Shown here: positions 7,207 through 47,052 of the stretch, piece by piece
How positions within the stretch are numbered: the first letter of the stretch is position 1
Layout: each line of letters begins with the position of its first letter
The notes under the pieces: generated by a model
The model's database searches: none
Seen by the model: the letters and a program-made list of their open reading frames with translations, nothing else
Told to the model about the DNA's origin: nothing
Assembly (NCBI GenBank): GCA_965153285.1
Contig: OZ229123.1
Direction: 5' to 3' (one strand)
Source of the DNA: Podarcis tiliguerta
Lineage: Eukaryota
Length of the DNA stretch: 64,000 bases
Translations under genes and position numbers: made by a program

Positions 7207-7254
7207 ATCCACAGAGAACTTTCCTGAAATGCATATGATACTTAATACCTTCAC

Positions 7255-11346: not shown

Positions 11347-11476
11347 CTAAAAAAAAAAAAGAATAATTTGTTTTCTGTTTAGACATTCCAAGCAGAAGAT
11401 TAGACAAAATGCAACACTCTTTCCAAGGGAGTCCGTTCCACTGTCAAACAGCTCTTACTATCAGAAAGTTCTTCCT

Positions 11477-12385
11477 TTTTTTTTTAAAATAATATTTTTT
11501 ATTTTAACCATCAATAAACAGACAATACAAACAAATACAAACAAATACAGATACAAAAAAGAAAAAAAAAGAAAACACAACACTTACAAACAATACAAAA
11601 TACAGTGTACAAAACAAAGTAAAAGAAAAAATTAAAAGCAATCTTTGTGTCTTTGCATTATTTATCATTAACCTGGGTCTGCGACTTCCCCAGTCCTTCT
11701 CACTCTGTATTCTAGATCTTATATTCTGACAGTAAATTCTTCCCCTCTGTCATATCTTTAGCTCTAATTAATCTTGGTATCTTAACATAATTGCATTTCC
11801 ATATGTCTAGAACATTATTCTTTCTTAATCATTAAGTTTTTATGCCAATATTTCTTTTAAATTCAGCCTGATGTCCTCAAACATTCTTTATCTTATGATG
11901 TTTCTGTAGATATTCTTTAAACTTCCTCCAATCTTTCTCCACCGTCTCTTCTCCCTGGTCTCTGATTCTGCCAGTCATTTCTGCTTGTTCCATGTAGTCG
12001 ATAACCTTCATCTGCCATTCTTCCAGCGTGGGTAATTCTTGCGTCTTCCAATACTGTGCGATGAGTACTCTTGCTGCTGTTGTAGCGTACATAAAAAATG
12101 TCCTGTCCTTTGCCTGAACCTGTTGGTTGACCATACCCAGGAGAAAGGCTTCTTTCTAAATGTGTATTTAAACACCTTTTTCAATTCATTATATATCATC
12201 TCCCAGAAGGACTTAATCCTTGGGCATGTCCACCAAAGGTGGAAAAAAGTACCTTCAGATTCTTTACACTTCCAACATTTATTATCGGGCATATAGTAGA
12301 TTTTTGCTAGCTTGACTGGTGTCATGTACCATCTGTAAATCATTTTCATTATATTTTCTCTTAGGGCATTACATGCCGTAAACTT
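11477..12385 (-). mobile_element. 5'-truncated L1-clade LINE (ORF2 C-terminus with CCHC motif, 3' UTR, polyA)
   Basis: ORFs 12008..12397 and 11877..12134 (frameshifted): CWKC..GTFFHLWWTC, TAARVLIAQYWK; AATAAA at 11503-11498; T-run; 16-bp TSD at 11461-11476 and 12451-12466. Confidence 0.88.
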
Positions 12386-12452
12386 GTCTACGTCCATACT
12401 ACCCGGCCATAAAGTCTACGGCCATACTACCCTGAACACGCCCGATCTCGTC
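12386..12452 (+). pseudogene. 5S rRNA 5'-end fragment(s) inside the L1 insertion
   Basis: GTCTACGGCCATACTACCCTGAACACGCCCGATCTCGTC at 12414-12452 matches about the first 39 nt of vertebrate 5S rRNA; partial duplicate at 12386-12404. Confidence 0.88.
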
Positions 12453-12828
12453 AGAAAGTTCTTCCTAATGTTTGGCCAGAATCTGCTTTCTTGTAATTTC
12501 AATCCATTGGTTCAGGCCCTATCCTTCAGAGCAGCAAAAAACAAGTTTGCCCCAACCTCCATGTGACAGGCTTTCAGATATTTCAACATAGCTACCACAT
12601 GGTGTCACAGTACGATCCCCAACAATGGGTAGCAATCGAGTGCAGACTGTCACAAAGAGAGGTCCCAAAGGCCAGTCTCCAGCCTATCACAAATAAAAAC
12701 TCAAAAGCTGTCCACTCCTGGCTTAACAGCAACTTCTCATGCCTCAAACTGGAACCAGACATGCAAGGAGGTAAATATTCCTCATTTCTTTTTAACCACC
12801 CGCTCAACTCCAAGGATAGGTAACATAC

Positions 12829-13010
12829 CTTTGTTTGATTCCTCCATGGCAGCCTTTATCAGAGCCAAGATTTCAACGCTATCACCAATCCTTGCATAGT
12901 AAGAGCAGTCATGGCCAAGGGCATCCACCAAAGTGACGTCCGCACCATTTTTGAGCAAAACTTCCACAGCATCCTTGCAGCCATATTCACAGCCTAACAT
13001 CAGAGATGTC
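12829..13010 (-). CDS. UACA: UACA exon 8 (TSLMLGCEYGCKDAVEVLLKNGADV...AMEESNK)
   Basis: AG acceptor, GTATGT donor, 182 nt; overlaps ORF 12782..13114. Confidence 0.95.
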
Positions 13011-13223
13011 CTGAGGATGGAAGAAGAAGCCACATGGGAACATGAGGAGTCTTGTGGAGATGGCACATGCAATGGTGGGCTCTGTGGAACAATCACTATG
13101 CTTTTTCTTTTCATCCGCTTGCATTAATATCCCCAACTCTGCAAAACTGCGGGCAAAGGGGCTCCCAATATGCAAACAGGCGCAATAAAACAGTTCACAC
13201 AACAAACCAGGCATGTGGTAATG

Positions 13224-13428
13224 TGTAGTCAGTGTGGCATAATGGTTGGAGACCAGAGTTTGAATCCCCACTCAGCCACAAAGCTCACTGGGTGGCCTTG
13301 GGCCAGAAACCATCTCTTAGCCTAACCAATCTCACAGGGTTGTTGTGAGAATTAAATGGGCAGGTGGAGAACCATGTACACCACCTTGAGCTCCTTAGAA
13401 GAAAAGGTGGTATATGCATGTAATAAAT
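13224..13428 (+). mobile_element. tRNA-headed SINE with MIR/L2-like tail (Squam3-like)
   Basis: GTTTGAATCCCCACTCAGCC...CTCACAGGGTTGTTGTGAG...CCTTGAGCTCCTT shared with several copies in the window. Confidence 0.7.
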
Positions 13429-14070
13429 AGTAGTACAAAATGAAAAATGCACCTGAAAAATTTCCATCAACTCAAAAACTCTCTCACATTCCATTGGTCT
13501 AATACTCCTACAGTAGATCATCCCACAAATGATCACAATCAGATTTTTCTTTTCTTCTTTTTCACAACACGTTTGAGACTTGAGATGCTTTTTTATCTGA
13601 AATGCTATCTGCTATTTATTTACCAGTGGCTTGTTGACAGAGGTATCCTTGTTTAAGCAGCTGTAGTTTGAACAAACCACCATTTTCTACACTGAACCAC
13701 AACGATAAACTATGGTTTGTTCCAACCAGGAATGGAACCTTTAAACCTCTTCCCCCTTGGCCACAGAGGGATGCGGGAAGAGCACAGAAGTCCAAGATTC
13801 ATCCAGGCTCATGTACATAATAATAAACCATGGTTTGCGGTGACATCTGAACCAGGCCAGGTTATCTGTCAATTGTCAAACTGATGATGCTGTATTAGTA
13901 AATAAATAAATGAAGCAGTCAGAATATTGCTATCTTTGAAGAAATTCCACCACTTCGGATCAACACACCCCAAGCTTGTGTCCAACAGCTTCATTGTTTG
14001 AATCCCCAAAGAGTGTTCTTTGGAAAGCATACAGACACATCACCCACGGGGGGCTAAATGGATGCATTAC

Positions 14071-14177
14071 CGGTTCTGTTTGTCTCTTGCATTGACATCA
14101 GCGCCCCTGTCGAGCAGAAGTTGGCATATGGCTGGACGGCACATCTGAGTGGCCAGCACCAGAGGCGTCCTCCCATC
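14071..14177 (-). CDS. UACA: UACA exon 7 (DGRTPLVLATQMCRPAICQLLLDRGADVNARDKQN)
   Basis: AG/GT boundaries, 107 nt; preceded by a 97-nt intron. Confidence 0.95.
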
Positions 14178-14274
14178 CTAGAGAGAAGGGGCAGGAAAAC
14201 ATTACAAAGGAGGGGTAAAATGAACTTGACCAATCCTGGGGAAGAACCCTGAAAGGGGCCTGCATGATACTTAC

Positions 14275-14345
14275 TGCATCTCTGGCATTCACCAAGGCTC
14301 CATGGTCACACAGTAACTGGATGCTGGATGAACAATCTGACATCG
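14275..14345 (-). CDS. UACA: UACA exon 6 (MSDCSSSIQLLCDHGALVNARDA)
   Basis: AG acceptor, GTAAGT donor, 71 nt. Confidence 0.93.
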
Positions 14346-15062
14346 CTTTGGGAGACAGAAGGACATCACATCATTAGTAAATGGGTCACTTCGCTACCGG
14401 TGGGCTATTTATATATTGTCAGATTTCTGTGAAAGGCTGCGCCTTTAAGATCTAGAAGCCACAACCGTTCTAATGACAAATGTCCAACCAGGGAACAGCA
14501 ATTAAAAAGGGCCAATATGCCACTATCTTCCATGCTTTACTCATTGCACCTGAACTCCAGCCCTGCAAGAAAAGCCTGTGTGTTGTTAGTGGCTCACCTA
14601 ACCCAACTACACCTTTATCAGTTGCCTGAGGCACAGAGATAGTGTGGAAGAGAACCTAGTCTCTCCCTAAAAGCTTCTCCTAACTGGTGGTCTGGAAGAG
14701 GAACATCGATCACTGGAGGGGGTAATAGGATTGTTTTTATCGTGCATTTTGTGTTCTCATTTTGAATTTTTATGTTGGGAACAACGCTATGATCTTTGGA
14801 CAAAGGGCAGTATACAACTTTAATAAACAAATATTGAAATAAGAAGTTTGCAGCCAGCCCTTCCCAATCTGCGGGGCGTCCAGATGTGCGTCATATGATG
14901 CTGGAGCTGGTGGGAGTCATAGTCTAAAACATCGAGACAACAAATTGGGAGAGGCTGTCCCAGCCACATGTGGAAATTGAGCAGCTATTCATATGCCTTG
15001 CCAAACACGGTCCTTCTCAAGGCGTTAGGAGAAATTGCTCCAAAGGAAGGAAACTCCCTTAC

Positions 15063-15120
15063 CTGCATCATGAAGAGCAGTGCGACCCTGAAGATCCACA
15101 TTTTCTGTAGGGCAGTTGTA
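15063..15120 (-). CDS. UACA: UACA exon 5 (YNCPTENVDLQGRTALHDA)
   Basis: AG/GT boundaries, 58 nt, G.TALH ankyrin motif. Confidence 0.95.
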
Positions 15121-16335
15121 CTATGGGAACAGCCAAAGACATTTCATCAATACTGTTATTACTATTAATTATTATTATCGTTGTTGCTGTTAAATTTATT
15201 ACCTGCCCTTCACCAGCAGGCCACAGAGCAGGTTACAACCATTTAAAATTCAGCTTTAAAAACAGCTAAAACAAATCACTGTCCCAAGAATATGGAATAG
15301 ACCTGTAATTTATTTATTCTAACATTTATGGTTAAGGGTTCCTAATAGTGGCAGCACTCTCATGATGAAAATATTTCAAGAAACATTTAAATAAGATTCA
15401 GCTCCAGAATGTTAAATGTGCTGTTCAACTTTGCAGATCTATTATTATTATTATTAATTTATTAGGGTTTTTTAAAAAACCAAAATAACTCAAAGGGACT
15501 TACAACAATAAGTAAATCACACATGCATTAAAACCAGCATAAAAGAAAATGGGGGGAATCTAAAATGCATTCATATTTTTAAAATAAAACATCCCATCTA
15601 CTGAAGGAGGCCAGAGATAATTAAAAGAAAGGAGTCAGAACATATAGTGGCTGTGCTGTACTGTAGATATCATACCTAACCTAATAATCTGGGAGGCATA
15701 ACAAAGGAAGCTTCCTTATATAGAGTCAGACCTTGATCCACCCAGCGCAGTATTGCCTACACCAGCTTTCTCCAACTAGCTGCCCTTCTGATGCTTAAGA
15801 TTCCCATCATTCCTATTAACAGGCTGGAGCTGATGGGAGAGACAATGTAAGAACATCTGGCTTTGGGAGCCTAGCCTACGCTGACTGGGAGAGGTTCTCC
15901 AGAGTTTCAGACAGCAGCCTTTTCCCAGGAGATGTCAGGTGATGAACATGGGAGCTTCTGTATGCTGTGAGCTATGGATCCTTCCCCATAAATCTTTATG
16001 AAACAGAAAGCTTCATACACACAGAGGAATTACCTGCTTATATCTATCCTAGCACAAAGACTCTCAGTTTTCTGCTTGTTTCTTCAGATTTCTTCAACAT
16101 CCCAATTTGAAAATAACAAGGTTCAGGGTGATCAAAACCTTATTAGATTTTTGGCCATTCCTGCACCAACATTTGGGTAAAGGTGTCCACACAGGGGCAG
16201 CTATAACGTGATGGGAATATTTCAAGGGACGACACACACAGAGAAAGGAAAAAAGCTTTGCTGTCATGGTTTCCCCTCACCGCCTACCCTGCCTTTTACA
16301 TGCAACACTTAAACAATTTCTCAAACATACAGTAC

Positions 16336-16400
16336 CTGCAACAATTTTTGCAGACAGAGTGCATGTCCATATTTCGCAGCGAGGTGCAGACCGTTCCTTC
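16336..16400 (-). CDS. UACA: UACA exon 4 (RNGLHLAAKYGHALCLQKLLQ), ankyrin repeat
   Basis: AG/GT boundaries, 65 nt, LHLAA..G ankyrin motif. Confidence 0.95.
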
Positions 16401-16519
16401 CTAGGGAGGTCAAAGTGACAAGGAAATGCAGAATGGAATCATGAAGGACATGGCAGAGCTTTCATTCAGTGTCTACCACAGACCCATACACACAGAGATG
16501 GGTTATGTGCTGAACATAA

Positions 16520-16861
16520 AAAGGTAAAGGGACCCCTGACCATTAGGTCCAGTCGTGACCGACTCTGGGGTTGCGGCGCTCATCTCGCTTTATTGGCCGA
16601 CGTACAGCTTCCGGGTCATGTGGCCAGCATGACTAAGCTGCTTCTGGCGAACCAGAGCAGCGCACAGAAACGCTGTTTACCTTCCCGCCAGAACGGTACC
16701 TATTTATCTACTTGCACTTTGACATGCTTTCAAACTGCTATGTTGGCAGGAGCAGGGACCGAGCGACGGGAGCTCACCCCGTTGCGGGGATTCGAACCGC
16801 CAACCTTCTGATTGGCAAGCCCTAGGCTCTATGGTTTAACCCATAGCGCCACCCGCGTCCC
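16520..16861 (-). mobile_element. Sauria SINE, full length
   Basis: Reverse complement closely matches 6855-7206; TSD-like TGCTG(A/C)ACATA at 16508-16518 and 16865-16875. Confidence 0.92.
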
Positions 16862-17260
16862 GCATGCTGCACATAGCTTGAGTTAAAATACTGACCATGA
16901 TGTAATTACTGTACTTTATACATCAATTCATAAGGGATGGAAAGACAATGGAGTATTTTAAGTGAATCTACCTTGAAGAGTGACCCAGCTTAGACCCTTC
17001 CATGATGTCTCAACTTCCCCATGGCTGCCAACAGCAAACCCTCACGACAACCCCAGGGATGTAATCGGCAAAAAGGTGGCTGGGAACCCAACAGGGACAT
17101 TGATACACATCTAAGAAGCTAGTTCACAACAACCCCTTTCCATATTCACTCAGCAAGTTTGAGCAATACATGAAAACATTTGCCCAACATCTTCTACAAT
17201 CTCTCTTTAGAAAGATCTTATCAGAGAGACAACCCTCTTATTTTAAACAAGGACTCATAC

Positions 17261-17349
17261 CTGCTGCATCAGTAGCTACAATGTCAACCCCGTGTACAAG
17301 AATGGCATTCAGACAATCAAGATTCCCTTTGGCAGCTACAACATGGAAC
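17261..17349 (-). CDS. UACA: UACA exon 3 (FHVVAAKGNLDCLNAILVHGVDIVATDAA), ankyrin repeat
   Basis: AG/GT boundaries, 89 nt, frame continuous. Confidence 0.95.
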
Positions 17350-17508
17350 CTAAACAAAGCAAAACAGGAAAATGTCTGTGTAATGTTTACATATACAAGG
17401 TTACAATTAAAATGTTGAAGTGCAATCCAACGCTATAAAAATACAAAAGCAGCGCAGAAAAGCACCTGCAGCAGAGAATAAAAAGAAATGCAACAAATAG
17501 GCTGCTGG

Positions 17509-17600
17509 GAGATAGCTCAGTCTGGAGAGCATGAGACTCTTAATCTCAGGGTTGTGGGGTTCAAGCCCCAGGGTGAGCCAAAGACTCTTGCACTGAATTT
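17509..17600 (+). mobile_element. tRNA-Lys(CTT)-derived SINE head
   Basis: TAGCTCAGTCTGGAGAGCATGAGACTCTTAATCTCAGGGTTGTGGGGTTCAAGCCCC resembles tRNA-Lys(CTT) but has no pairable acceptor stem. Confidence 0.7.
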
Positions 17601-17702
17601 ACTCTTAGCCTAACCTGCCTCACAGGATAAAATGTGGAAGAAGAGAATTATGTACACCACCTTCACCTCACTGGAGGAAAGGTGAGATGCAAATGTAATA
17701 AA

Positions 17703-17753
17703 TTATTATCATTATCATTATCATCATCATCATCATCACCATCACCACCACCG

Positions 17754-17800
<47 letters not shown>
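17703..17800. repeat. Compound microsatellite (ATT/ATC/ACC)n-(TATC)n
   Basis: Read directly. Confidence 0.9.
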
Positions 17801-17801
<1 letters not shown>

Positions 17802-19880
17802 TTTCCACCCTTCATCCTATGATCCCAGGGAGGTTACAACATTAAAACACAACTATAAATATAAATGGGATAAGTAAATGTGAGCTGAAAGGTCTCTTAG
17901 AGCCCTCGGGATCTATTAGCTTCTGGGGGTGAACCAATTTAATAGGACACCACCCTTACAGAGAAGCAAGAGGAGGCCGACAGAAATTTAAACCTTAACA
18001 GGATATGGCCTTACCATGGCAAAAGCCTTCTTTAAACACACACACACACCACAACCAGACCTCCTCATCCTCCTCCTGCCTCATAGAGAAAACCAAACGA
18101 AGCGTCTCCTGCTATGTCCCGAGGGCCAATAACGTGTCGGGGCCATAAAATCCTGAACAGCTCTGGATCTGGCAGCACCAGAAGGAGACTCATCCAAGGG
18201 GTTTCTGGATGTCTTGGTCTCAATGTGCAGTGCAATCCTACACACGTCTAGTCTGAATTAGGACTTTTTGGGATTTAATGGGATTTACTTCTGGGTTAAG
18301 AAAGTAAAGGACTGCAGTTCAAATCTTCCAACAGGAGAACAATCTTTTAGAACAAGCCTTCTAAAATCTTTACCCCAGTTTGTATCTGGGATTTGAATTG
18401 GTTTTATGTATGTACTGTTGTTGTTTTAAAATGTTTGTATTTATAACTGGGTGATTTCTAAACTGTTCTTTTTATTGTTGCAATTTCTTTAACTGTGTTA
18501 ATATACATAACTGTTGTATATATGCTATATTGTAAATTGCTTTGGGATGCCTCACAGAAAGCAATTCATAAAATGAATGAAGAAGAAGAAGAGGAGGAAG
18601 AAGAATGTGCAACAGGTAAAGCCTAATGGAAAGGCAATTTTTGAGCAGCCAAATAGAATGTAGGTTAACCCTGGATTTCTGTTTTTCAGTCTGCTGAGAA
18701 TGCACAAACTCAGAGATTTCTGTAATTCTCAGCAATCCTTACAACAGCCCCGTGAAGCCGGCCATTGTTATCTCCATATTAGAATAAAGGGGCTGAGGTG
18801 CTGGCTTGCTCAACACCAACTAGTGAGCTCATGGCTAAGCTGAGAAGCCACATTTCTGGATGTTGGTTCCAGAGAGTGAGAAGCTGTGCCTGAATGCCTC
18901 TGACCTCTGGCTTTCATCTTGGAAACTCTTGGGGGTATGCAGGCTGTGACCTACAACCACCCAGACAGAGTCACTCACCACAAAGCATCCAATACAAGGC
19001 TCACAGAATAACCCTAGCATTAAATGTCCTCACCGCTTACCGTTTAAGACAGAAAACAGCTTTGTGCAGTAACTTGAGACTGCCATTCAAACCTTCTCCG
19101 GATTGGCTACTGAGAAGCTTCTGAAGTTACCACAAATATCTCCCCTTTTATTATGTGCGCACACAGGAGTTCAGAGAGTGAAACAAAAAGGGACCTGGGA
19201 GTGGGACAGACACCACACAAGTAATACAAACCGCATGGGAAAGACCCAGGCCTTTTATTCTTGTCTGGAGCAAGTTTGGAACCAAACCACAAACACACCC
19301 TGCAACCTAGACAGATTTTTTTGAATCAACCAGGCAGAGACCACCCAATTACTTGCTTCTGGATCTGCTGCATATTACTGTGTCAAGGAAAACAATTCAT
19401 CTCAAGCAGCTTTCATAGTGCCTTCCAGTTGCTGTTGGACTACAGCTCCCATCAGCCCCAGCCAGCATGGCCCAAGACAGGAGGTGGTCAGAGCTGCAGT
19501 CCAGTAACATCTGGAGGGCCCCCAGGTTTCCCCTCCACTAAACCACATGTTTACACAGTTCGGCATGACATCCAAACATGCCCTGTATGTGTGGAAGCAT
19601 AAAATGCTCTTCCGCAGGATGCAGGTCCCAACAGCTTTCTGTTTATTTAAAACATTTCTGTGGCACCTTTCCAAGGCTCAGGGAGGCTTACAGGAAATAA
19701 GCACTAGGCAGATAAGAGCCAACAGAAACAACAGTGCCCCTCTCAAAAATTTGGAAGGGGCCAGGAAGATCAAAGGCAAAAAAGACACATCTAAGCAGCC
19801 CCCCTCCAAGGGGTGGGTGGGCTACAAACTTGGTGGGAGGTGGGCAGAGCAGCTGAGGTAAAACCCCGACTTCTACTCAC

Positions 19881-20014
19881 GCAGATCTTCCTTCCACATC
19901 GAGTTTGGTGGGGTTTACGCCCTTCTTGGCAAGGACAGACGAGATCTTCTCCACGTCGCCCCGTTCGGCAGCTTTCATCAAGCGATCATCGTACTTGTTC
20001 CAGTCTGCTGTCAA
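19881..20014 (-). CDS. UACA: UACA exon 2 (LTADWNKYDDRLMKAAERGDVEKISSVLAKKGVNPTKLDVEGRS)
   Basis: CAG acceptor, GTGAGT donor, 134 nt; start of the ankyrin region. Confidence 0.95.
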
Positions 20015-20719
20015 CTGTTCAAAGAATGCGGGAGAAATGTTTTCAGTGTACAGTGGTGCAAATCCCTCAGAAAGCTGAGCAAAAATGCCTGTTTCCCATA
20101 GAGGATAAAGTGGGGGAGGGGGGGAGAAGTGTTATTCATCTGCCATCCATGTAGCTGGAAGGGAAAATCCCTTAAGAAACGGAAGCCAAGGAAAGCTGCT
20201 TCTGGGCTTTAACAAAACAAAAAACTGAAGGAGCTTGGTTTCACATATTATTGTGTCAGTTTAATACGGAAAGTACTTAAGAAAAATCCAAACACTGAGA
20301 AAACCATGAAGGATTCATGCCTTTTGCAACCCATTATTTACTGGCATGCAATGTTATTCTCAGAAAATAAGATAATAGGATATTTGCAGCACCTTTCTGC
20401 AGTTCAATGTATATTTGAATGTGCTTAGAGATGCAGAAGGTCTCAGCTCAATGAGCAGCTTCACTTAAACAACGATCGGAGGAATGGGTTACCTTAAACA
20501 CAATCAGGCTTGGTGTGGGGAGTGTTTTGGCTTTTCCAAGCCTAATAGCTAGAGGGGAGAGGTGACCTTCTTGCAGACTTCACCTGGGGAGGCAAAGTTA
20601 GCCCTCCAGCCAACCACCCTCACTGCACTCTCTCCAGAAAGATCGCCTCTCCTGCAAACACAGTTAGGCTTCAACAAGGCTTTCTTTTTTGAACTGAATT
20701 TTACATAGCACACACACCA

Positions 20720-20940
20720 AGCCAGTGGTGGTGCAGTGGTTAATGCTGGACCTGGGAGTAGGGGGTTCAAGTCTGCACTCAGCCTTGAAGCTTGCTGGGT
20801 GTCCTTGGGCCAGTCACTCACTCTCAGCCTAGCCTACCTCACAGGGTTGCTGTGAGGATTGAACGAGGAGGGGGAGAACCACATAAGTCACCTTGAGTTC
20901 CAGGGGAGAAAAAGGTGAGATATAAATGCAAAAAATAAAC
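20720..20940 (+). mobile_element. Squam3-like SINE
   Basis: Same family motifs as 13224-13428. Confidence 0.7.
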
Positions 20941-22637: not shown

Positions 22638-22752
22638 TAGGGCTGGGCGATATCTGGTTTTCAACATCACAATATATCACCAGCTAAATATCACGATATC
22701 TCGATATATATTGTGATGTTATTTCAATACTGGTATTTATTGCACAGCCCTA
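22638..22752. mobile_element. hAT-type MITE
   Basis: TIR TAGGGCTG...CAGCCCTA; 8-bp TSD (C/T)TTCCAAT at 22630-22637 and 22753-22760. Confidence 0.8.
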
Positions 22753-24381: not shown

Positions 24382-24417
24382 TGTGTTTTTAAGGGCACAG
24401 GAAAACCAGCAACTCAT
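24382..24417 (-). CDS. UACA: UACA alternative first coding exon 1b (MSCWFSCALKNT)
   Basis: ATG at 24417 with an in-frame stop upstream; phase-0 GTAGGT donor; resembles the mammalian UACA alternative N-terminus MMNCWFSCTPKNR (recalled). Confidence 0.85.
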
Positions 24418-30115: not shown

Positions 30116-30240
30116 GAAGCTAAGCAGGTCCGGTTCTGGTCAGTTCCTGGATGGGAGACTACTTGGGAACTGCAGGCATACTACCTTGGGTTCTAGGGTG
30201 GATGGAGGGAATAGGATATCAGCATAAGGAAATATATACA
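30116..30240 (+). mobile_element. Degenerate 5S rRNA-derived element (SINE3-like)
   Basis: GAAGCTAAGCAGGTCCGG..TGGATGGGAGACTACTTGGGAA matches the 5S internal control region. Confidence 0.6.
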
Positions 30241-30417
30241 AGGTGCAACCCGAATCAAGAATATTCAAATAATAGTGGGAATTGACTAGAACTAGCCATA
30301 CTGACAAATGCCACTGTTTGTATCAAAGATTGGGAATTCACTGAGATCCGATGGAATGCTTCCATGCATTTTGAAACCCACTATTCCCAAGGTTCTTCAT
30401 TTGGAAATTTGCTAAAT

Positions 30418-30597
30418 TGATTCATTGCATTTCCACCCCATCATCCCTCCAAGGAGCTTAAGCTTCTCTTCCTCCCCATTTTATAATCACAACAGCCCTG
30501 TGAGGAAGGTGAGGTTGCAAGACAGTGAGCTTCACGGATGAGCAGGGATTTGAACCCTTGTCCAACACACTAATCACTGCACCACACTGGTTCTCCA
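30418..30597 (-). mobile_element. Squam3-like SINE, degraded
   Basis: Antisense family motifs (ACAACAGCCCTGTGAGG, GGATTTGAACCC, CACCACACTGGTTCTC). Confidence 0.6.
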
Positions 30598-33500
30598 AAT
30601 GCACTGGCTGTACTTGTTTGTGCATGTCCCTAGCCTGCCTCACATGATGCCAGACTACACACAGAAAGAATTAGCAGCAGGGGGTCCCACACTCATGCAT
30701 TTGGTAACCATGCCTTGCCCCAACTATTCATCCTTAAGCAGCATTTGCTGCCAAAGGGGAACTCAGTATAAAGTGTGTATGTGGGCCATCAAGATCTCTC
30801 CCTCTACCCTCGTTTTTGCCACAGATGCTCATGTGAAATTAGTGGTTGTTTGTTTACACACACACCCTCCCCTTTTTGCTTCTTCCTGCCTCATGGCCCG
30901 GACTTGTAGCACGAGAACAGCAACACTAGTGATTCTCCTGCCAAGACACACAGAGGCACAGGCTTCCAACCACACAGCAGCTTTTATTTTAAAACGGGCT
31001 ACCTGCCAAAGCGAGTGCCTCTGTAGATGGCACCCCACCTTGATGACACTCTGGAAGCCATGCAGAAACACACACAGCACTCAGTCCAGACACATTTCTT
31101 TATCATAAACACAATCAGTCATGATTTCCAGTAGACCCCACCTACTGCTGGTCGTTTGCCTTTCTCATGGGGAAAACATAGGAAGCTGCCATATACTGAG
31201 TCAGACCATTGCTCCATCTAGCTCAGTTTTGTTCACACTGGCTGGCAGCAGCTCTCCAGGGTTTCAGAATGGGGTCTTTCACAGTCCTACCTGGAAAAGC
31301 TGCTGGGGAATGAACCTGGGACCTGCTACACGCAAGGCAGATGGCTCTTCCTCTATGGGTTTTCCTCTGCTATACAGTCTCTCATTACCTCATTTAACAT
31401 AATAAATAGCTTTAATACTATCAAGCGACCAGTGGGGTGCGGTCAGGGGACAAGGCTAGTTCCCTAAATATTCCCCTGGCACCTCCTTCCCAAAGCCTGG
31501 GAAGCTTCTGCCTGGCTTAGGGAGGGAGGTACGATGCTCATGTGTGCAACATCGCTCATGTGCACATTGTCGTCCCAGTCCTCCCATCCCCACAATCGTC
31601 CTTGCAAGCTGACACCTCGGGCCTTAACTGTTCCCCTACAAAAAAAATCACCGCACACCACTGCAAGCAACATATTGGATGCCAACATTGCTCACAAAAA
31701 TAAATATTTTTCTGTGGAGTGTATCTAAGAACAGATTTGCTCTTTAAGTCACAAGTCTGCATACAGTAGCAACAATTCTGAGAATTTGGGGGTAAACTGG
31801 GACAGTGGGGAAGTCATTGGCATAGCAGCAACTGGACACAGTTAGCCAAACTGCTTGGAGTCCCAATACATGGTCCTCAATATGTCAGCATCACTGACAG
31901 TTAAACAGATACTGTGATATTCCATGCTAGTTCTTTTCAGACTAGACTCTCTGAAGTTAATAACTTAGGTTAGGACCTGAATACAACCCATATAGTCCTA
32001 GACTGTGCCGCAAGTGGAGATGAGGGATGAACAATCTATACCAGCCTTCGTGAAGCTGGCTCCCTCCAGATGTTTTGTACAACAGCTGGTGGGAATTGTG
32101 GTTACAAAAGATCTGGAGGGCACCAGCTTGGCAATGCCTGAACTACACCACACCAAGGTGTTTGCAGGGCAGATAAATCCAGAATGGTTTAAGCAAATGA
32201 GTAAATCTTTACAAGTGGACACGGAAGGAGGGGTGGGGAGGAAATGGAAGGGTCACAAGCCAATTGGCCTTGAGGAAAATTTGCTTACACATCTGGAAAA
32301 ATAGGCATCAGATCCTGAGAATGAACTAAAACTCTCCCATGAAGTTTCTTCAAACTCAAGCCTGCCTCACCCAGCATAGACACGTCCCCTTGGAAAAATA
32401 TTTGGGGAACTGCTTTTTTCTTATCATTAAAGCTACATTCACCCTAACTCACGATTTAGCCAAAGGAGGAGAGCATTCCAGAAAGATTAAAACATCACAG
32501 GAAGAGACTGACCTTCCTGTTACATGTGGGAGGGACAGCCTGCTCCTTCTCAATTAGCTGGCAGCTTTCTCAGTTTAATTGCCCAGCTCATAAAGTCTGT
32601 GTTTTGCAAATGTCAGTGTCTTCACCAAAGTGGGGTGGAAGGAATAAGTCTTGTGCCACCTTAATGAATAAGGACAGTCTGCCATCAGTTATGAGATGGC
32701 TTCTCGAGGGTAGAATAAATTCCAAGCAAACACCCACAAAAGCAACAGGAGGAAGCACTTTCACACACTTCATTTCTTCCCACAAGAAAAAGGAGTTTGA
32801 AGCTTATGTTTAGTTTGGAAAGAAACAGGACCCCACTGCCACCTCCATATACAGGCACCCCCCCAATCTTACACACAGTCTGAGGGACAAACAAAATTAA
32901 ATCCAGCTGATGTTTACATGCCATCACTCACACTGGCAAGAGTGCTTTATTTCCGATTATGAAATGGAAAGACAAAATGGAAATATCCCTTTCAAAGGGA
33001 AACCAGCAGAGCTTAGCTGACAGATTTGGAGGTGCCTGTGATTTGCGCAGGCTGGAATACTAATGCAAGCAATCCGACCTAAGAGCCTCACTCAAAAGTA
33101 GGAAAGTTAAGAGAATTTCCACAGTGTGCATGTTTGTAAGAGGTCAGGACTGAAAATCATGCAAGCAAATAGGAATCGTTTTCGCTAGGGCTGTCTTTTA
33201 AACCCACAAACATTACTTAAATTGCATTATTCCCTGCATTGTTTCTGACATTTTACTTCCATTGACATGCACTGAAATTAATTGTGTACATTTCAGCCAT
33301 AGCTGGCAGCAAGATGAATAAGGTAGGTTTTAGTGGAAGCAGACCTGTAGTGGAATAGAAACAGTGCTTATTGGGCCAGTCACTGCCTCTCAGTCTAACG
33401 TACCTCACAGGGTTGTTGAGGACTTGGAGAAAGAACTATGTATGCCACCTTGAGCTCCTTGGAGGAAAAAGGTGGGCTATAAATGCAATTTATTACATTT

Positions 33501-36500
33501 ATTTTTATTATTTTTACTATTTTTATTGTTGTTGTTGTTGCAATGAATGCAGGACAGGATTGAGATGGCTGCCGCCTTACATCCCTATGCAATAGTCAGG
33601 TAAACCTGAATGTAGTGCAAGCGCAGGCCAAAGAATCACGGGCCTAAGCCTGCAGCTATCCACTGAGTGTACAAAACTGCTTTACAGGAAGTCAGGCCTG
33701 TATCATCGTCTCTGGCTAGCAGGGTTCTCAAGTAGAGGAAAGTCACTGCCAACTGTGCTACCTAAGGCAGTTTTTCACTGTGGATCAGCATTCCTTAATC
33801 TGGTGCCCTCCAGGAGCTTTGGATTACAACTCTCCAGCCAGCATGGATACGGGAGTCCTATTCCAAAACATCTGGAGGGCATCAGGCTGCCGTGATGCTG
33901 GGGGGCTGTACCTGGGACTTTCCCTATGCAAAGCAGGTTCTGCTCCACCAGTGAGCAGCACTGGCCCCTCCCCTGCTGGAAGAGCAATGACTTGACAGTG
34001 TATTCTAGAACTGTAGAACAGCAGGTTTTAGATTAACCCTCCACCCTGTAATTAATACAGGCAAGTCTTGACACATTTAACCACTAATAGCATTTCATTC
34101 AAGGCACACATTTTTCTTCTCAGAAGAAGTTGCATAAATGTCCACTCCCTATATATGAAAAACACACAAACACACATCAGTAAACAGTTCAGTAAAGTAT
34201 GCTTCTGAGCAATAGAGCATGCTGAAGTAATTCTGAAGCATGGAAACATGCCGTTGCAACACTCAGTTGAGACTCCCAAGAAGAAATCTACAACTTGGCC
34301 ATAATGATTTCGTTCATTGGCAGATCTCCTCAGTTCTTTTAAGCAAAGCTGAAAATCCAACATTCTCTTCGGCTGCAATCGCTGGATTCTGCAGAGAAGC
34401 TGCCACTGATCTGCCTTCAGTTGGGTTAAGACTCCTGAGTTTGGAACAAGGAGGGTTATGTCCACTATCACTTGTTAGTAAAGTAATAGCTGTGCAATTT
34501 GGCACAGATTATCACTGATCCAGCCAACAGCAATCAAGACCCCACACATATCCGCATAAAATCCATATTCCCTGAGCAGCACAGAGTAGGGAATGGTGGA
34601 GGAACTGGAGGAAGGGGGTGCAGTGGTCTGCATTCCACAGCTAGCTCTTTTGACCTGCAACTCCTGACTGAGTTGCACACTAGAACATGGCCCCTCTCTG
34701 AAATCCACACTCCACCAAATTCTAGGTGGTCCAAAATCCATCTTTAAAACATATGGTTTATTTCTCCTACAGGTAAAAATAGCTTGGAGCAGCTAGAAAG
34801 TGTGCAGCTGCTCCCATCTCTGATGCAAATGGGGCCACAAGTTCCCCTGGGATTGATGCAACATGGTAATGTCCCTTCCTATGAAACTGTATGGAAAGTT
34901 TCCAATTTCATAGGAAATTGGTAGTCCTCTAATGCCATCTTATTTAAAGCAGGAATCAGCATACATTTGTTTTTTTGAAAACTATTGCTATCACACTCAA
35001 GTGGCTTACGTCACAGAAGCAAAACAACAAAAAATAAACACTTTGCTGAGGTTTGTTTTAAGAAAATAAAATAAAAACCAATACCAGGTGTTACAAAGAA
35101 CAACAACAGTGTTACAAAGAGTGTGACAATTGCATGAGGTTTCTGGCCCTTGAAGTAAGCAATTCCTCCTACAACACCACCACCTTAACTGCTACTCTCT
35201 TCCAAGAACTTTTAAACCAGGATGGCAACCAAGGTGCAAACCTATGTAAACCGTTTGCAGGAAAGCTAAGGCTGTCAGCATAGCCAGTATCAGATGCTCA
35301 GCATTCTGTTTGCTCTCAAGAAAAGGGCCACCTTTCCCTTTCATCTGATCACATTAAGGGTCAGCAGAGTCTCCACAAAGCTGTTTGTTGAATGCAAAAT
35401 CTGAACAAAGGAAGGAAGCTGCCCACTGAATGTGCTGATAACCCTGTGCCCCAATTCAAACTCCACTGCCTCCACACACACACACACCTAACTGATCTGG
35501 GGAAATTTAAGAACAGAGCTGTGATCAGCATTACTATAAACTTAATAAATTACATCAAGGGTGAGTAGAAGGCAGATTTGGATCTACTGGTAGATCTCTT
35601 GGGAGACTTGCAATAGATCTACATGGGTTGCTGACTCCAATAGCAATAACAAAGGGACCTTTCCCACCCAAATTAGGCTGCCAAAATGAAGGAAGTGAAT
35701 TAGGAGCAGCATTTTGTGTGTGTGAAAGAAAGGAGCTCAAGTCTGGTACTGAAAAGAAATTTCTATGCTTGGAGCACTCTGTTCTTTTCTTCCAACCATC
35801 TTTTGCACCCAGCTCTGGTTGGGGTTGTAGCAGGCAAGTAGTAAATCTGGCAAAACAAACCTAAACTGCCCATTTCTCAGTTACATTATATTTATATCGT
35901 CATGGAGCAAGCATGCCAGCTAATGTGAAGGCTGCTTTTAAATTCAAGGAGTACAGAATGGGAATCTTTGTTTCAAAAAGAGGAGGTAATAACAGCATTC
36001 CCATAGTTACACACTGGGCCTGGCTTTCTATGACTACAAACACAAATGACCTCGGATTGCCTCAACGTTGCTAATTAATGAGTGATGCAAGCTTATGACC
36101 AGTAATTAATCCAGGCACAGCAGAAATTGCAGCATGCAATAGCCAAAGTCTGATCAATGAAATGGAAAACTCACACAGCGAGAGCCCCTCCTTGCTTCTG
36201 CTGCTGTGTAAAGGCTGTATCAGGCGGGAGGAGTCATGGGTCTCAAAAAGTACTTTTCCACAAGATACAATTCATGGGGCAAAATCCAGTTGTGATTAAA
36301 AAAAAATGCCCAGAAAGAAGATCTACATTTGGAGCAAAGTTCAGCAACTGACAGAAAGGCTAACTTCAGTGTGCAGTCAGATACTGCCAAGTCCGACTGC
36401 AATGAAGAGGCTACATTTCTCTGAGTTGCTGGCATATTCTAGGAGGAAACTGTCCTCCTCAAATTTGTCCTCTGTGTTCCTCATTTCTGGCCTAAACACA

Positions 36501-39500
36501 CAACACTTCATCTTTCACTGTCCTGAGTATATGCAGATTTCAGCAACCATCTCAATGGGCAAAGCTCTGAGTTCTGCCTGCATGAATCTCAACGTCAATC
36601 ATTAGCCCTCATGAAATCAGAGTTACAACCATTTATATAGTTTATGACAGTTCTGAATTTTTCCCCGTCCGCCTTCCTTTTGAGGGGATCCATTTTAGCC
36701 AAAGTAGGCGTAGCAAGCCAACTTGATTCCTTGGTTTGCAGCCTATTCCAAATTCAAAAGTAGGCTGAGAGCAAGAGTTGCTTGACTTGAGATGTTACGA
36801 AATAAGTGAATTACCTTCCTAATGCAACAAAACCCAAGCACTTCCTACACACCTCATCTTCTCACTTTACACATCCCAAATGTGTGTTCTCACACACAAT
36901 GGGCACAACCCTAGCACTATTTCATGTGCAAAACATGCATACACATACAAAAAATGTGCCACAAACGCCTCAAGGAAAACCCTCCTTAAGCGCTCATATT
37001 TTCAACATTTGAATCAAAACAGGAGATAAGTTTGAAGAAAAGAATGCTGAGACAATGTCTAATTTCATGGTACAGGTTGTATGTCTACAGTACTGGCTTG
37101 CATTGGTCTGGATGCCTTTGGCAAGCAGCAATAATTTCCAGACAACAAAGCAAATGAGTTTTTGTAAATAAGAATTTGTTCTTCCAAACAGCTGATACAG
37201 CACTAATGATTGATGTATGTGGTCAGGTAAGCTAATAATGGGCAAAGGAGATTCCACCCATTTGGAGTCTACACTAGCTATGGTTCAGTGGGCATGAATG
37301 TGTCAAAACAGCCTAGACCAACAGGTTCCATAGCAAAATAAGTCTGGCTAAATCTTTAAAAAATGAGCTACCTCTAAAGAACAAGTTTGTGTGTACACAA
37401 GTTCTTTTAATTTATTACCCACTCTTCACCCTAAGGGTTCCTGAGCAGGTTAGAAAGTTCCTCCCTCTAGCATATTTATTGACTCACTCTAAAAGTCACA
37501 AATTTCAACAGCTTGCCAAAAGCCATCCATCACCTTCCCGAAAGGGATTTGGTCAAGGGTGCACAAGTGGCTTTATTTTACTCTGACCATAATCTGATGA
37601 ACATTTAAGGTTCTGCCTCAGTGTAGAGGTTGATATGTTTTATACCTCCTTTTAACTTTGTATGCATATGCATAAGTCTTAATCTAAAAAACATGTTGTC
37701 GGGGGGGGGGGTAGCTTGCTCAGCTCTACTGTTGCTTTCACAATCACAGTCAGCCCAATGTTAAGGTTCCCAATACCACTTTTTCTCCCATATATTAACA
37801 ATCCATAACACCAAGAAGCAAAAACATGTTCTAATTATGAACGCACTTCAGTACGGAGGCAATACACCTTGTTCCATTTTCACACCTTCATTCATTTCCA
37901 TATTATTAATACTTATTATTATTTATTGAAGTTATATACCACCGTATACCCGCAGGTCATATAACACCTTTTGCAAGAGAAATGAATTCATTTCATCAAG
38001 TTTGTGAGAGAGGTTGCTCTATTCCTATTCTATAAGAGCAGCACGGGGAAAGAACTGAGGTTAGACATGGACTTATGTGCCGCCTCATAGCAAGAAAGCA
38101 ACAGAGCTGCAAAGTTCCCCTGTGACATGAGCAGCTCCAAAGCCTCAGCATCAAGCTGTTCCAATGATGGATGGGAGCATCGTTTTCTGGGGATTGGTCA
38201 AAGACTACCAACAATTTGAGAAGATTTTACTGAAGGAGAGACTGACACCAAACACAGCACACTAAAGGTGTGTGACAGCCACCAGCAGCAGCTAATGAAA
38301 AATACTGGAGGGGGGGAGATGCACTCCACAGTTATGGAGCATGAAGGAATAATTATAGATTATCTGTCATGCAATCAAAGCAAAAAAACAACAAAGTCCT
38401 CAAACAAATTATTCAGCGCCTTCCTCTCAGACCCCAACACAACACATAACCTCAATCTCTTCCCATGTGAATTCACCCTGAGGTGCCTCCCTTCCTGGTA
38501 ACAAGAGTGTGGTTTTCCGACATGCCAAATTAAAGATGACTAATTTAGCATGTATCTTGTCAAGTATCTCAGAGTCTTGTCACTGTGATGACAACCAAAG
38601 TCATTAACAGGTACACAACTCTACCGTGAAATTCCAGTACTTGCCCTGAAGTCATCAAGGTTTGCCTCACCTGCCTGCTTACTTCACTTCCCACAGACGT
38701 TAATGTGAAGTAAGAGGCACACAAATGGATTCAGGCCTGTGGATCAGACACATCAGAGGTTCTCAAACAGTGGTCACAGACCACTGGTGAACTGCAAGTT
38801 CCCTTTAGGTGGTCCTGGGAAAAGCTGTGGAACAACTGGATTTCTTCTTCTTCTTTTTTGATGACTAACAAGACCATATAGAGCTGGGACCAGATTACTA
38901 AACAGACTATGGCCCATGATTTTCATACAACAGCACTAGCGCAATATGGGATTTTCATCACTCCACCTCAAGTCTAAATACAGAAGCAGGAAAAATGTTG
39001 CAACTGACAAACCCAACTTCAAATAACTTTTGTTCACAAGAACAGGTACATTCATCACATTAGAAAAGACAATACTATGGTTATTAAGATACTAGTTAAA
39101 CATGTGCTTTGCTTTACAGAACAAAAAAAAGTTTCTTAAGTGGTTTGCTGAAAAAAGTTTGAGAACCAATAAACAACTTAAGTGAACAGGGCCCTTTCCA
39201 ATGTATGTTCAAAGAAAGCATAATTAATCATTTTATGGCTGTTGTCCCAAATCTACATAGTTGGAAGTATGTCTGGCTGGAAGCAATGAAACTTATTTCC
39301 AACCATACGCACTACTGCAACAGTTTGACTTCACCCCCAGGGACACACTCCATTGTCTCTTGAGACAGATGGATGACAACAACACACTTTGGGCTGATAT
39401 ACAATAAATCTTCATCTTTTGTGAAGTCATGTCAAACTTAATTAAGATAATGTTCATCATGCCTGTATCCATATTTTTAAAAAAAGTTCTTAACACATTT

Positions 39501-39999
39501 TCGGGGGGGGGGAATTAAATGCACAAAGTGTTCAACAACTCACTTTGGTGCTTTCAAGGGAAGCAGTTTAACCAAGAAGCCTTTTTAGTTCACTTCAAGA
39601 GCGGCTGAACAGTTTCCCAGATGAACTTATTTTCAAAAACATGGCACGCAGCTTTCCATCTCTTTTGCTCTCACAGAACATTTCCTGGGTGCTCCTATTT
39701 CAGCTTTGCTCAGCAAGTGCAGAGGATCGCTATGCAGGGGAGGCCTTCTCAACTGCACATAAATTCTGCCAGCACCAGCATCAGGAGGAGGGCCAAACTC
39801 ATTCAGCTTTTTATTTGTGTGTGTGTGTGACAACAAATGCAGAGCTTACGTTGCCCTGGAAAGTGCAACCCATGCAACAGTGAGAGGGAGGGAGGGAGGG
39901 AGAGATCTGTGGCAACTGGATTAAGGGCGAAAACTTTCCTACCTCGGGATTTGGATCTCCATCCTCCCCCACAAAAAAAAAAAAAAAAAGAAAAGAAAA

Positions 40000-40860
40000 G
40001 AGGGCGAGCGCGGGGGCTTAGAGAAAAATATGTCAAAACAAGGAAGAGCGTGACTTTGCTGCTGCTCCTATTGTCCCTCCCCCCATTCCGTTTTGTGGGT
40101 CACACATTACCCCATTTCCCTCCCTCTTCCAGACGACCCTCCAACTACCTCCCTCGCTGTATCCCCTGGAAAGACGGGAGCTGCATGCCAGAGTCCTCCC
40201 AAGTTCTCCCCACTTTCCCTTTCCAACCCTCTGCCACCACTTGCCCTGAGGCTGCCCCTCCCCCTCCCTTGGCCTGAGGCTGCCCCTCACTCTCGCCCCC
40301 TCAGCGCCCTCTTCACCTGGCCCTCCCCTCCCAGCCACTCACCCCCCCGAGGCTGCCACCGCCTCCCGCCACCGACACTTCCTGCTTCCTCAGGCGGGAC
40401 TTGAGGCTCTTCATGATGTTACTGCCGCCGCCACCGCTGCCCCTCAGACTTCGGGACGGGACGACGCTCGGCGCCGGCGCCCCTTTCCTCGCCCCGCCCC
40501 TCCACCCACACCCGGCCAATGGGAGACGGCCAGGCCCCCGCTGCAGCCATTGGGGAGGCGGATCCTCGGGGGAAGGGCGGGACTTCCTTGGTCTCCTTCG
40601 GCAAGCGGCTCCCTGAACGAGGACTCCGTACCTGGGGCGGGAGAGGGGCGGGGCTGGCCAGGTGCCTGTGGGGCCACGCCCCCTAGGCGGGGAGGAGGCG
40701 GGAGGCTGGGCAGCTTTAAAAAGGGCCTCGCGGACCCTGCGCTGGAGGAGCGGCAGCTACAGCCGCCCCGGTGGGAGGCACGTTGGGCTGCCCTCCGCGC
40801 GTAGCATAGCGCGGGCGAAATAGGCAGGAATCAGTGGCGCATCGAACGTTCGCATTGCTA
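40000..40860 (-). promoter_or_regulatory. CpG-island promoter of UACA exon 1a
   Basis: Dense CpG and high GC; GC boxes at 40491-40500 and about 40634-40653; CCAAT at 40516-40520 and ATTGG at 40549-40553, just upstream of the ATG. Confidence 0.8.
40343..40414 (-). CDS. UACA: UACA first coding exon 1a (MKSLKSRLRKQEVSVAGGGGSLGG)
   Basis: ATG at 40414 inside a CpG island; matches the MKSLKSRLR N-terminus of UACA/RAI14-family proteins; phase-0 GTGAGT donor at 40342-40337, in frame with exon 2. Confidence 0.92.
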
Positions 40861-42234
40861 AGATCTGATAAAGTTGACAATCTTTTCTTGGACTTTGCTG
40901 TTTTAACTCATGTCCAACTCATTCTACGTGCCTATTTTATAGCTTTTTAAAATCTTTTTGTCTGTTTTATATACATTATAAAATGATAACAAATAAATAA
41001 ATTTGCCAAAAAGACGACCCCCCCCCCACTAACCTTGCTGAAGCTGAGCAGGCCTGGATGTGTGGCCTGCATGGCCACCCTTGCATCCTGAAAGGGCACC
41101 AGCCACAGGCCCATGGGGCAAGGGGGCAAGTGCTATTGATGGCTAAGCCCATCCTGAGCCTTGGCCCATAACTAAGGGGGGCAGTTGCCCCCCAAATCAA
41201 TGTAAATCTAAGGTTCTGCCCCCCCAAAAAAGTTTGCCCCCTCCCCTACAAATTGTTGCTATGCCCATGAGGCTCAGGGGAAATTAAAAGGACGGACTTA
41301 TTCAAACAGCACATGGTTAAACTCTGCAACTCAGTCCCGGAAGTGGCAGTGGGTGGCCACCAATCGAGATGGCTTTTAAAAAGTATTAGACAAATGCATG
41401 GAGGAGAGAGCTGTCGATGGCTACTAGCTGGGAAGCTGTTCTCTGCTGCCAGAATTAGCAGCAGAAATGCTTCAAAATACCGATTGCTGGAAACCACAGG
41501 AGGGGAGAGGGCTCTTGTGGGTTTCTCACAGACATCTGGTTGTCCACTGTGAGGACAGGGATACTAGTCAAGATGGACCACTGGCTTATGCTCTTAAAAG
41601 GATGGGTGGCTGGGTCCTGACCCTACCCCACCCCAAAAAGAGGCTTTTAATGAGGAGGGAGGGAAACAAATATTTTCAGAGTACCCAATGGGAATAATAG
41701 TTTTATGTGGGGAAAAAGAAGATGCAGAAAGATGCAAGCCAGTCCCCTGCTCCAGACAATGACCCTACTTGGATTGCAATAGGACCCATTGCAGTAAGAC
41801 TGCCAGCTGTCTGGAATTGGCATTGATGTAACCCAGCCTGATGCCCTCCAGATGTGTTCGACTACAAGCCAGCATGACGGGGACCATCCGCCTCTTTCCA
41901 AAGGGTCACATGTCATGCGAGTCTGCCTCCTGAAGATGACGCTTTCCACAAGATCTGATGGCCGATCTTATCAGGGTTGTTTACCATGGGAAAAGAAACC
42001 CAATTTTTTTCCACATTGCAGTTAGAAAGGATCCTTCCATGTTGGCTCAGGAAAGAATCTCAATGGAGAAGCTAAATGTCTGGGGGACGGGGAACAGATG
42101 CTGCAGGCAGGAGGAGTTTAGCTCCTAAGAGGCCTCATCAGGTCCCTTCCACCTGGGCACTCTCCCTACCAGGATCTCCACACAGCTGGGGAGCTTCTGA
42201 CAAAGGGGAGGAGTCACAGAGGCAGTGACTCCGT

Positions 42235-42935
42235 GAATCACAGAATTGTAGAATTGGAAGAGGTACCAAGGGTCATCTAGTATAACACTCTAAAACAAAG
42301 GAATCAGAGCTAAATTAAACCTGAGAGATGTCCATTCAACCTCTGTTTAAAACCTTCCAAGGAATGAGCGCCGTGGTCCATTCCATTGTCAAACAGTTCT
42401 TACCATCAAGGAGGTTCTTCCTCCGTCTCTACCGGTGGAGGAAGATTGGAAGAAATTTAAAGGCTATTTACAGAAATATTATAAAATTAATGAATGTTAG
42501 AATGACGTTGGATGGAGGTTAAAGGGTTATTAGTAATAATGTGGTGGAGTACGGAAAATTTGAAGGTTAAAAAGAGGAAGAATTAAAGGTATAATACACT
42601 AAGATAAAGATAAAGATAAGACAGAGGGGAAGGGATTTGCTGATTAAATATTTGAATTGGAATACAGAGAGGGGAGGTGTGGGGAAGTCTGGGAAACAAG
42701 CAAATGTAAGAAATACTATGAAAATGGAATTGTTTTTACTTGTTTTTCTTTCTATTTTTGTATTTTTCTTTTTCTTTTTCTTTTTAATGTGAAAGTCTTA
42801 ATAAAATATTATATATATAAAAAAAACCAAGGAGGTTCTTCCTAATGCTAAGTCAGAATTTTCTTCCTTGTCATTTGAATCTACTGGTACGGGCCCTAGC
42901 CTCTGGAGAAGCAGAAAACAGGCTTGCTCCATCTG
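42235..42935 (-). mobile_element. CR1 LINE 3' fragment, interrupted by the L1 insertion
   Basis: GAATCACAGAAT tail and GGTCATCTAGT motif; homologous to the host at 11420-12600. Confidence 0.75.
42423..42827 (+). mobile_element. 5'-truncated L1-clade LINE (last ORF2 codons, 3' UTR, A-rich tail)
   Basis: Encodes VEEDWKKFKGYLQKYYKINEC*, related to VEKDWRKFKEYLQKHHKIKNV* of the 11.9-kb element; AATAAA near 42800; TSD CAAGGAGGTTCTTCCT at 42407-42422 and 42828-42843. Confidence 0.85.
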
Positions 42936-46868: not shown

Positions 46869-47052
46869 TGTAAGAGCTGTTTGACAGTGAAACAGACAAC
46901 CTCGGAAGGTGTAAACGCTCCTTCATTGGAGATATCTAAGCAAAGGTTGGGTGGACACCTGTCAGCGATTCTTTAGTCATGATCCTTGCAGTGCCGGGGT
47001 TTAGACTAGACGATCCTTGGGATCCCTTCCAACTCTACATTTTATGATTCCA
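46869..47052 (+). mobile_element. CR1 LINE 3' end
   Basis: GTAAGAGCTGTTTGACAGTG...CCCTTCCAACTCTACATTTATGATTC. Confidence 0.7.

Follow-up and report, generated by a model that had tools for sequence, protein, structure and literature searches.

Two independent L1 insertions at the homologous position of two CR1 copies in a 64-kb stretch of Podarcis tiliguerta DNA

The DNA analyzed here is a single 64-kb window, without N, of contig OZ229123.1 from the Podarcis tiliguerta assembly GCA_965153285.1; "the window" refers to this whole stretch. It holds two pieces of the retrotransposon L1, each lying inside a copy of the repeat CR1. They are the only L1 pieces in the window and also its only events with both a poly(A) tail and a target-site duplication (TSD), so that everything said below about insertion concerns two events (n = 2). 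Insert 1 (11477-12450, 974 bp) has its L1 on the minus strand, and insert 2 (42423-42827, 405 bp) has its L1 on the plus strand. We use n1 for the plus-strand nick after TTCTTCCT and n2 for the minus-strand nick 16 nt further left. The parts of the first locus are:

11400..11460, minus strand: CR1 copy 1, 3'-side part, bounded by the left nick n2; placed by alignment to CR1 copies 2 and 3
11461..11476: left TSD copy of insert 1, TCAGAAAGTTCTTCCT; its right edge is n1; 16/16 match to 12451-12466
11477..11486, minus strand: T10 as read on the plus strand, the poly(A) tail of insert 1; its primer was the n1 3'-OH
11487..12385, minus strand: 5'-truncated L1 of insert 1, with ~170 C-terminal ORF2 codons and ~390 nt of 3' untranslated region (UTR)
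12386..12450, plus strand: 5S rRNA-derived piece, antisense to the L1
12451..12466: right TSD copy of insert 1, TCAGAAAGTTCTTCCT
12467..12620, minus strand: CR1 copy 1, 5'-side part, placed by alignment and translation

Those of the second locus are:

42235..42406, minus strand: CR1 copy 2, from its 3' end (octamer terminus at ~42235) to the nick n2
42407..42422: left TSD copy of insert 2, CAAGGAGGTTCTTCCT; 16/16 match to 42828-42843
42423..42432, minus strand: inverted L1 segment of 10 nt (CCGTCTCTAC), a small twin-priming product from the n1 3'-OH
42433..42818, plus strand: 5'-truncated L1 of insert 2, with the last ~22 ORF2 codons and ~318 nt of 3' UTR
42819..42827, plus strand: poly(A) tail of insert 2, A8 followed by a further C; the minus-strand 3'-OH of n2 was its primer
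42828..42843: right TSD copy of insert 2, CAAGGAGGTTCTTCCT
42844..42950, minus strand: CR1 copy 2, 5'-side part, placed by alignment to the other copies

Both inserts have a poly(A) tail, a truncated 5' end and a TSD within the 7-20 bp range, which are the features of L1-type insertion. The TSD of insert 1 is 15-16 bp long, as its final T can be assigned to the poly(T) run instead, and the TSD letters differ between the two inserts. Empty sites were rebuilt by removing each insert together with one TSD copy; the empty site of insert 1 is known in silico only. The two rebuilt sites align at 106 of 135 positions (79%, E=5e-22). On the plus strand, the right-hand border of the TSD (TTCTTCCT/AATG) occupies the same alignment column in both sites, and the left-hand border the same column to within 1 nt, the offset being due to a 1-nt indel inside the TSD. 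An earlier note on this DNA had proposed that two L1 elements inserted at homologous nucleotides of two CR1 copies and that the same staggered nick pair was used both times; the exact 16-bp TSDs, the likeness of the empty sites and the coincidence of the TSD edges bear out both proposals.

Read-derived evidence is available for insert 2. Logan contigs, from one run each for the source species (A) and three relatives (B, C and D), were compared over 41800-43400. In the source species, error-free contigs of single-copy depth cross both junctions of the insert. In species B, C and D, position 42406 is joined to 42828 with 16 letters common to both sides, which is the empty site; one of these contigs (946 nt, single-copy depth) runs into both flanks. 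The flanks differ by ~3-4% between the source species and B-D. Since the site is empty in three relatives, insert 2 is a real insertion and younger than the split from B, C and D. Parts of its 3' UTR (42556-42609 and 42772-42825) are almost absent from the contigs of B-D, consistent with a young family. The two insertions are independent, as they differ in orientation, truncation point, L1 family and TSD letters and as the orthologous site of insert 2 is empty.

The assignment of both inserts to L1 rests on the C-terminal codons of ORF2, and no reverse transcriptase or endonuclease domain lies within the 64-kb window. In insert 1, ORF2 contains a CX2CX8HX4C knuckle, a spacing that has been reported for non-mammalian L1 (PMC5381506); it has one frameshift near 12156 and a stop at 11877-11879, and its C terminus reads ..DWRKFKEYLQK... 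It matches residues 1093-1161 of human L1 ORF2p in a solved-structure search (E=1.8e-9) and matches zf-RVT in Pfam. A full scan of protein representatives gave endonuclease/reverse transcriptase (EN/RT) proteins of Podarcis muralis as its closest relatives (89% and 86% identity), the closest of which matches human ORF2p with E=1e-72; related full-length proteins carry APE endonuclease, reverse transcriptase and zinc-binding domains. In insert 2, the ORF2 stop is at 42498-42500 and the C terminus reads ..DWKKFKGYLQK.., with 25 codons if the inverted 10 nt are read through. The C-terminal Cys-His domain of L1 ORF2 is thus found in insert 1, and insert 2 shares its last ~22 codons. Together with the source names, the Pfam, solved-structure and protein-atlas searches describe an "L1 ORF2p-like, EN+RT+zf-RVT" protein, a description that does not distinguish the L1 from the Tx1 clade. 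A word-index protein search with both L1 ORF2 pieces as query returned no candidates; no related locus was found in metagenome contigs, and an exact CR1 20-mer scan of them was blank.

The 3' UTRs of inserts 1 and 2 are collinear and 72% alike. Because their 3' ends are no more alike than this, comparison of the two assigns them to related but distinct L1 families. The earlier description of the inserts as related L1s and not a duplicated composite therefore stands: the ORF2 C termini and the collinear 3' UTRs relate them, and orientation, truncation and family set them apart. The stretch at 42448-42501 (..EDWKKFKGYLQ..) has a summed contig depth of ~30,000 times single copy in the source species, a rough figure, and similar or higher values in the three relatives. 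This end of ORF2 is conserved over very many L1 copies and families in these lizards. L1 is therefore abundant, and two young copies per 64 kb are unremarkable. In read-derived de Bruijn contigs, repeats are collapsed and L1 ends cannot be traced into the flanking DNA.

Alignment and translation identify the host repeat as CR1; in both copies its sense strand is the minus strand of the window. Translation across the rebuilt site of copy 1 gives ..PNIRKNFLIVRAV.QWNGLP.., and the target site falls in the I-R-K-N-F-L codons of CR1 ORF2, ~185 bp from the CR1 3' end. The translated ORF2 C terminus of a neighboring CR1 copy has 1015 homologs in birds and lizards, among them Podarcis lilfordi and one entry named RNA-directed DNA polymerase; at the target these read LNIRKNVLTVR or DIRKNFLT. 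Copy 2 ends at ~42235 in octamer repeats (ATTCTACA ATTCTGTG) with the terminus ..CAATTCTACAATTCTGTGATTC, and a CR1 fragment at 7250 has the terminus ..ATTCTGTTATTCTGTG. Both show octamers of the ATTCTRTG type, and an octamer-repeat 3' terminus is described in the literature as a hallmark of CR1. Exactly at 42235, between 141 and 171 contigs diverge in each of the four genomes.

Nine CR1 3' fragments are present in the window. Only two of these copies have a complete target site, and both are filled by L1; uninterrupted paralogous CR1 sites are present in the read contigs of all four genomes. One further copy extends to the target region:

46867..47050, plus strand: third CR1 copy, the only other copy in the window that reaches the target region

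The homology of this third copy ends within 1 nt of n2 (..CTCTTACAAT|AGGCTGGG). Near the break we found no L1, TSD or CR1 continuation; it may be a chance 5' truncation at that point or what is left of a further event there. A palindromic element resembling a miniature inverted-repeat transposable element lies at ~46680-46815 (..GGGAACCTGTGG..CCATGGGTTC..) and adjoins this truncated copy. In the CR1 fragment at 7250-7565, an internal deletion at ~7373-7386 has taken out the whole L1-target region, and the ORF2 C terminus is otherwise readable. One database record also touches on CR1: protein P0086, a 135-aa "hypothetical protein, partial" from a Streptomyces shenzhenensis record, is 66% identical to the lizard CR1 ORF2 C terminus and most likely represents vertebrate contamination of the bacterial record.

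In both inserts, inverted cDNA abuts the 5' TSD within one TSD pair. This is the footprint of twin priming, reportedly described by Ostertag and Kazazian in 2001, and in each insert it lies at the nick that lacks the poly(A) tail. The suggestion that either nick can prime is thus upheld, and the footprints support priming of reverse transcription by both 3' ends in both events. In insert 1, the inverted material derives from 5S rRNA: 12414-12450 corresponds to 5S nt 1-37 on the plus strand. Its nt 1 is found at the junction with the L1; at the other end, two bases of overlap with the TSD correspond to nt 38-39. The call was made in a narrow 49-nt search with the Rfam 5S_rRNA model (positions 1-44, 21.2 bits, E=0.0062), in which the last positions of the alignment extend into the TSD, two of them being genuine overlap; the piece is missed at the Rfam gathering threshold because it is too short. 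The preceding segment, 12386-12413 (GTCTACGTCCATACTACCC..), is a second partial 5S 5' end, and the pair suggests that synthesis from the n2 primer jumped twice in succession to a 5S rRNA template.

In insert 2, CCGTCTCTAC is the reverse complement of the L1 sequence immediately upstream of the start of the direct part. Its reverse complement matches positions 499-508 of insert 1 at 9 of 10 nt, and position 506 of insert 1 is the counterpart of the first base of the direct part, which gives a 3-nt overlap. The L1 RNA contains AGGAAGA 3 nt downstream of the point to which the inverted segment extends, and this motif is complementary to the target flap TCTTCCT. A snap-back hairpin was considered as the source of these first 10 nt and rejected, the expected palindrome being absent.

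Antisense 5S(1-45)/L1 chimeras are found in primates, where they have been attributed to twin priming (bioRxiv 10.1101/2025.02.02.635956). The lizard inserts resemble them in that inverted cDNA abuts the 5' TSD and in that the 5S piece of insert 1 is antisense with nt 1 at the L1 junction. They differ in their host and in the inverted segment of insert 2, which is merely 10 nt long. In insert 2, moreover, the canonical-looking nick (TTCTTCCT/AA) made the inverted piece and the other nick took the poly(A) tail.

On balance, we think it probable that these are two independent, ordinary events of target-primed reverse transcription (TPRT), by two young L1 families, at a generic site that has been multiplied by the copy number of CR1. 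On the antisense strand, the target reads AGAAAG-TTCTTCCT/AA, that is, a purine run, an 8-nt pyrimidine run and AA. The n1 context, TTCTTCCT/AATG, is an L1-endonuclease-type site, and n1 primed the poly(A) tail of insert 1. In the mechanism we propose, n1 would be cut at this Y8/AA site, which resembles an L1 endonuclease site; at a distance of 15-16 nt there is a pyrimidine-rich run at the end of the opposite strand as well, where n2 would be made as the second nick. The ORF2p endonuclease would put its second nick at discrete positions for a given target, so that the same n1 on homologous sequences would lead to the same TSD. Pyrimidine-rich 3' flaps on both strands, ~16 nt apart, would thereby make this a good generic site for L1 integration.

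The difference between the inserts would then lie in how the two primers were used. For insert 1, n1 would take the poly(A) tail and the n2 3'-OH would copy 5S rRNA in trans to its 5' end. For insert 2, the n1 flap (TCTTCCT) would prime inside the L1 RNA to give the 10-nt inverted piece, and the poly(A) tail, one additional base included, would be primed at n2; the orientation of insert 2 would be flipped because the n2 flap took the tail. We infer this order of nicks and the annealing of the flaps from the junctions described above. While human ORF2p makes the first strand, its endonuclease domain cuts the top strand at discrete positions (PMC7617806), which would explain both an early second primer and equal TSDs, of one length per target, on homologous targets. 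The human data come from a designed substrate in vitro.

Several observations weigh against this account. Under the textbook model, poly(A) priming in insert 2 would have taken place at a nick with the context CCTCCTTG/ATGG, not YYYY/AA, and the nick resembling a pyrimidine run followed by AA is at the 5' junction, so that use of the same endonuclease site twice requires a swap of roles between the nicks. TTCTTCCT ends in CCT, which pairs poorly with poly(A), and is not obviously an optimal L1 primer. Both complete sites are filled and the third CR1 copy is cut off within 1 nt of n2, a pattern that looks like more than a generic preference. Finally, the per-window probability of coincidence is ~1e-3 to 1e-2 for the shared n1, and less when orientation is counted.

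These probabilities follow from the number of available sites. The window before insertion contains 835 YYYY/AA sites, of which 129, n1 included, are Y8/AA; given one hit, the odds that a second falls on the sister copy are 1/835 for YYYY/AA sites or 1/129 for Y8/AA sites. Such odds are small for one window and not negligible over many hundreds of windows. Pure coincidence, with this position no hotter than any other pyrimidine run followed by AA, would draw on the frequency of CR1 3' ends in the window and the abundance of L1, and 666 windows of this genome have been read, so that a ~1e-3 event can surface once. Sharing of both nicks in opposite orientation is much rarer than sharing of one common endonuclease site, homology of the third CR1 copy ends at the same place, and in human DNA hotspots for transposable elements within transposable elements (TE-in-TE hotspots) are the rule rather than the exception (PMC2836564); we therefore consider coincidence alone unlikely. 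At the other extreme, the L1 lineage itself might encode a preference, either for TTCTTCC(T)/AA or for CR1 more widely, with lacertid elements of the L1 superfamily making a fixed staggered nick pair and inserting in either orientation. The elements would possibly be Tx1-like, akin to the groups that target (TTC)n or (TTCC)n, and CR1 3' ends would be their preferred landing pad. Before insertion, the window had exactly two occurrences of TTCTTCCTAA, and both are hit; both complete CR1 sites are filled by the only two young L1 events of the window; both nick positions are common to events of opposite orientation, as expected if the site dictates both nicks; the target resembles a TTC repeat; and reptile Tx1 families are known to favor particular transposons or (TTCC)n/(TTTC)n microsatellites (PMC4494074). 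The eight other TTCTTCCT sites in the window, by contrast, are all empty, and the uninterrupted paralogous CR1 sites of the four genomes point the same way. Two families with 28% divergence in the 3' UTR would need a common property, the best solved-structure match is human L1 ORF2p, and the poly(A) tails, variable 5' truncation and trans 5S rRNA chimera are the behavior of a relaxed L1. To our knowledge, the sequence-specific LINEs (long interspersed nuclear elements), Tx1 families included, recognize an asymmetric site and insert in one orientation; here no orientation is fixed, insert 1 being sense and insert 2 antisense to CR1. Taken together, we place an encoded preference no higher than coincidence, as an improbable explanation.

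A variant in which lacertid L1 ORF2p makes a fixed staggered nick pair at a junction of purine and pyrimidine runs that is conserved in the IRKNFL codons of CR1 ORF2, and starts poly(A)-primed synthesis from either 3' end, with CR1 3' fragments as an orientation-free preferred site for several L1 families, seems to us more doubtful still; it would amount to repeat-directed integration in a relaxed L1 without strand-specific recognition. A duplicated composite of CR1 and L1, gene conversion or misassembly would make the two events artefactual or non-independent. Nothing was found in favor of any of these, and all three were rejected: the two inserts have different orientations, lengths, families and TSD letters, their CR1 flanks are 79% alike, and, for insert 2, to which the read evidence applies, the junctions lie in error-free single-copy contigs of a public run and the site is empty in three relatives. 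Artefact is accordingly extremely unlikely, and artefact and all other explanations together are very unlikely. The account by ordinary TPRT at a generic site is thus the one we retain, and with it, at the same level of confidence, the view that the recurrence is at most a TE-in-TE hot position, possibly a coincidence, and not the work of a CR1-specialized element. We infer accordingly that lineage-specific targeting is absent. The earlier note had envisaged a single L1 lineage that targets CR1 as a safe harbor; two families, opposite orientations and a generic pyrimidine-run/AA site speak against it, and targeting of CR1 by these L1s is a minority possibility that the present evidence does not show.

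The finding is bracketed by known phenomena on two sides, human TE-in-TE hotspots and the repeat preferences of reptile Tx1 elements. In human DNA, TEs, among them Alu mobilized by L1, show single-position hotspots inside older TEs, which are not always those predicted from TTAAAA (Levy, Schwartz & Ast 2009, PMC2836564). The likeness lies in independent retro-insertions at the same consensus position of an older, abundant repeat; the human hotspots, however, comprise thousands of events, mostly with an orientation bias, and the lizard case comprises two events in opposite orientations. Among Tx1-clade LINEs, Tx1L inserts in Tx1D, Kibi and Koshi in (TC)n/(TTC)n, and crocodilian families in Mariner-N4, Harbinger or (TTCC)n (PMC4494074). 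These too belong to the L1 superfamily, carry an APE-type endonuclease and land in a particular repeat, and the lizard target is TTC-rich. Most copies of a Tx1 family, in contrast, sit at one defined position, and in the lizard two families are involved and orientation is not fixed.

The pair provides a clean, textbook illustration of TPRT: the TSDs are exact, sister species retain the empty site of insert 2, and both L1 RNA and 5S rRNA served as templates for twin priming. It gives no evidence of a new targeting system. If an excess of insertions at this position were confirmed, the site would be a natural target for studying how the L1 endonuclease places both nicks and how insert orientation follows from the choice of primer, and it would indicate that TE-in-TE hotspots of the human type also shape squamate genomes.

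Elsewhere in the window, two weak matches to the tRNA model barely exceed the Rfam gathering score: 8038-8108 on the minus strand (30.7 bits) and 17513-17570 on the plus strand (29.7 bits). Both are probably the heads of tRNA-derived short interspersed nuclear elements and not tRNA genes.

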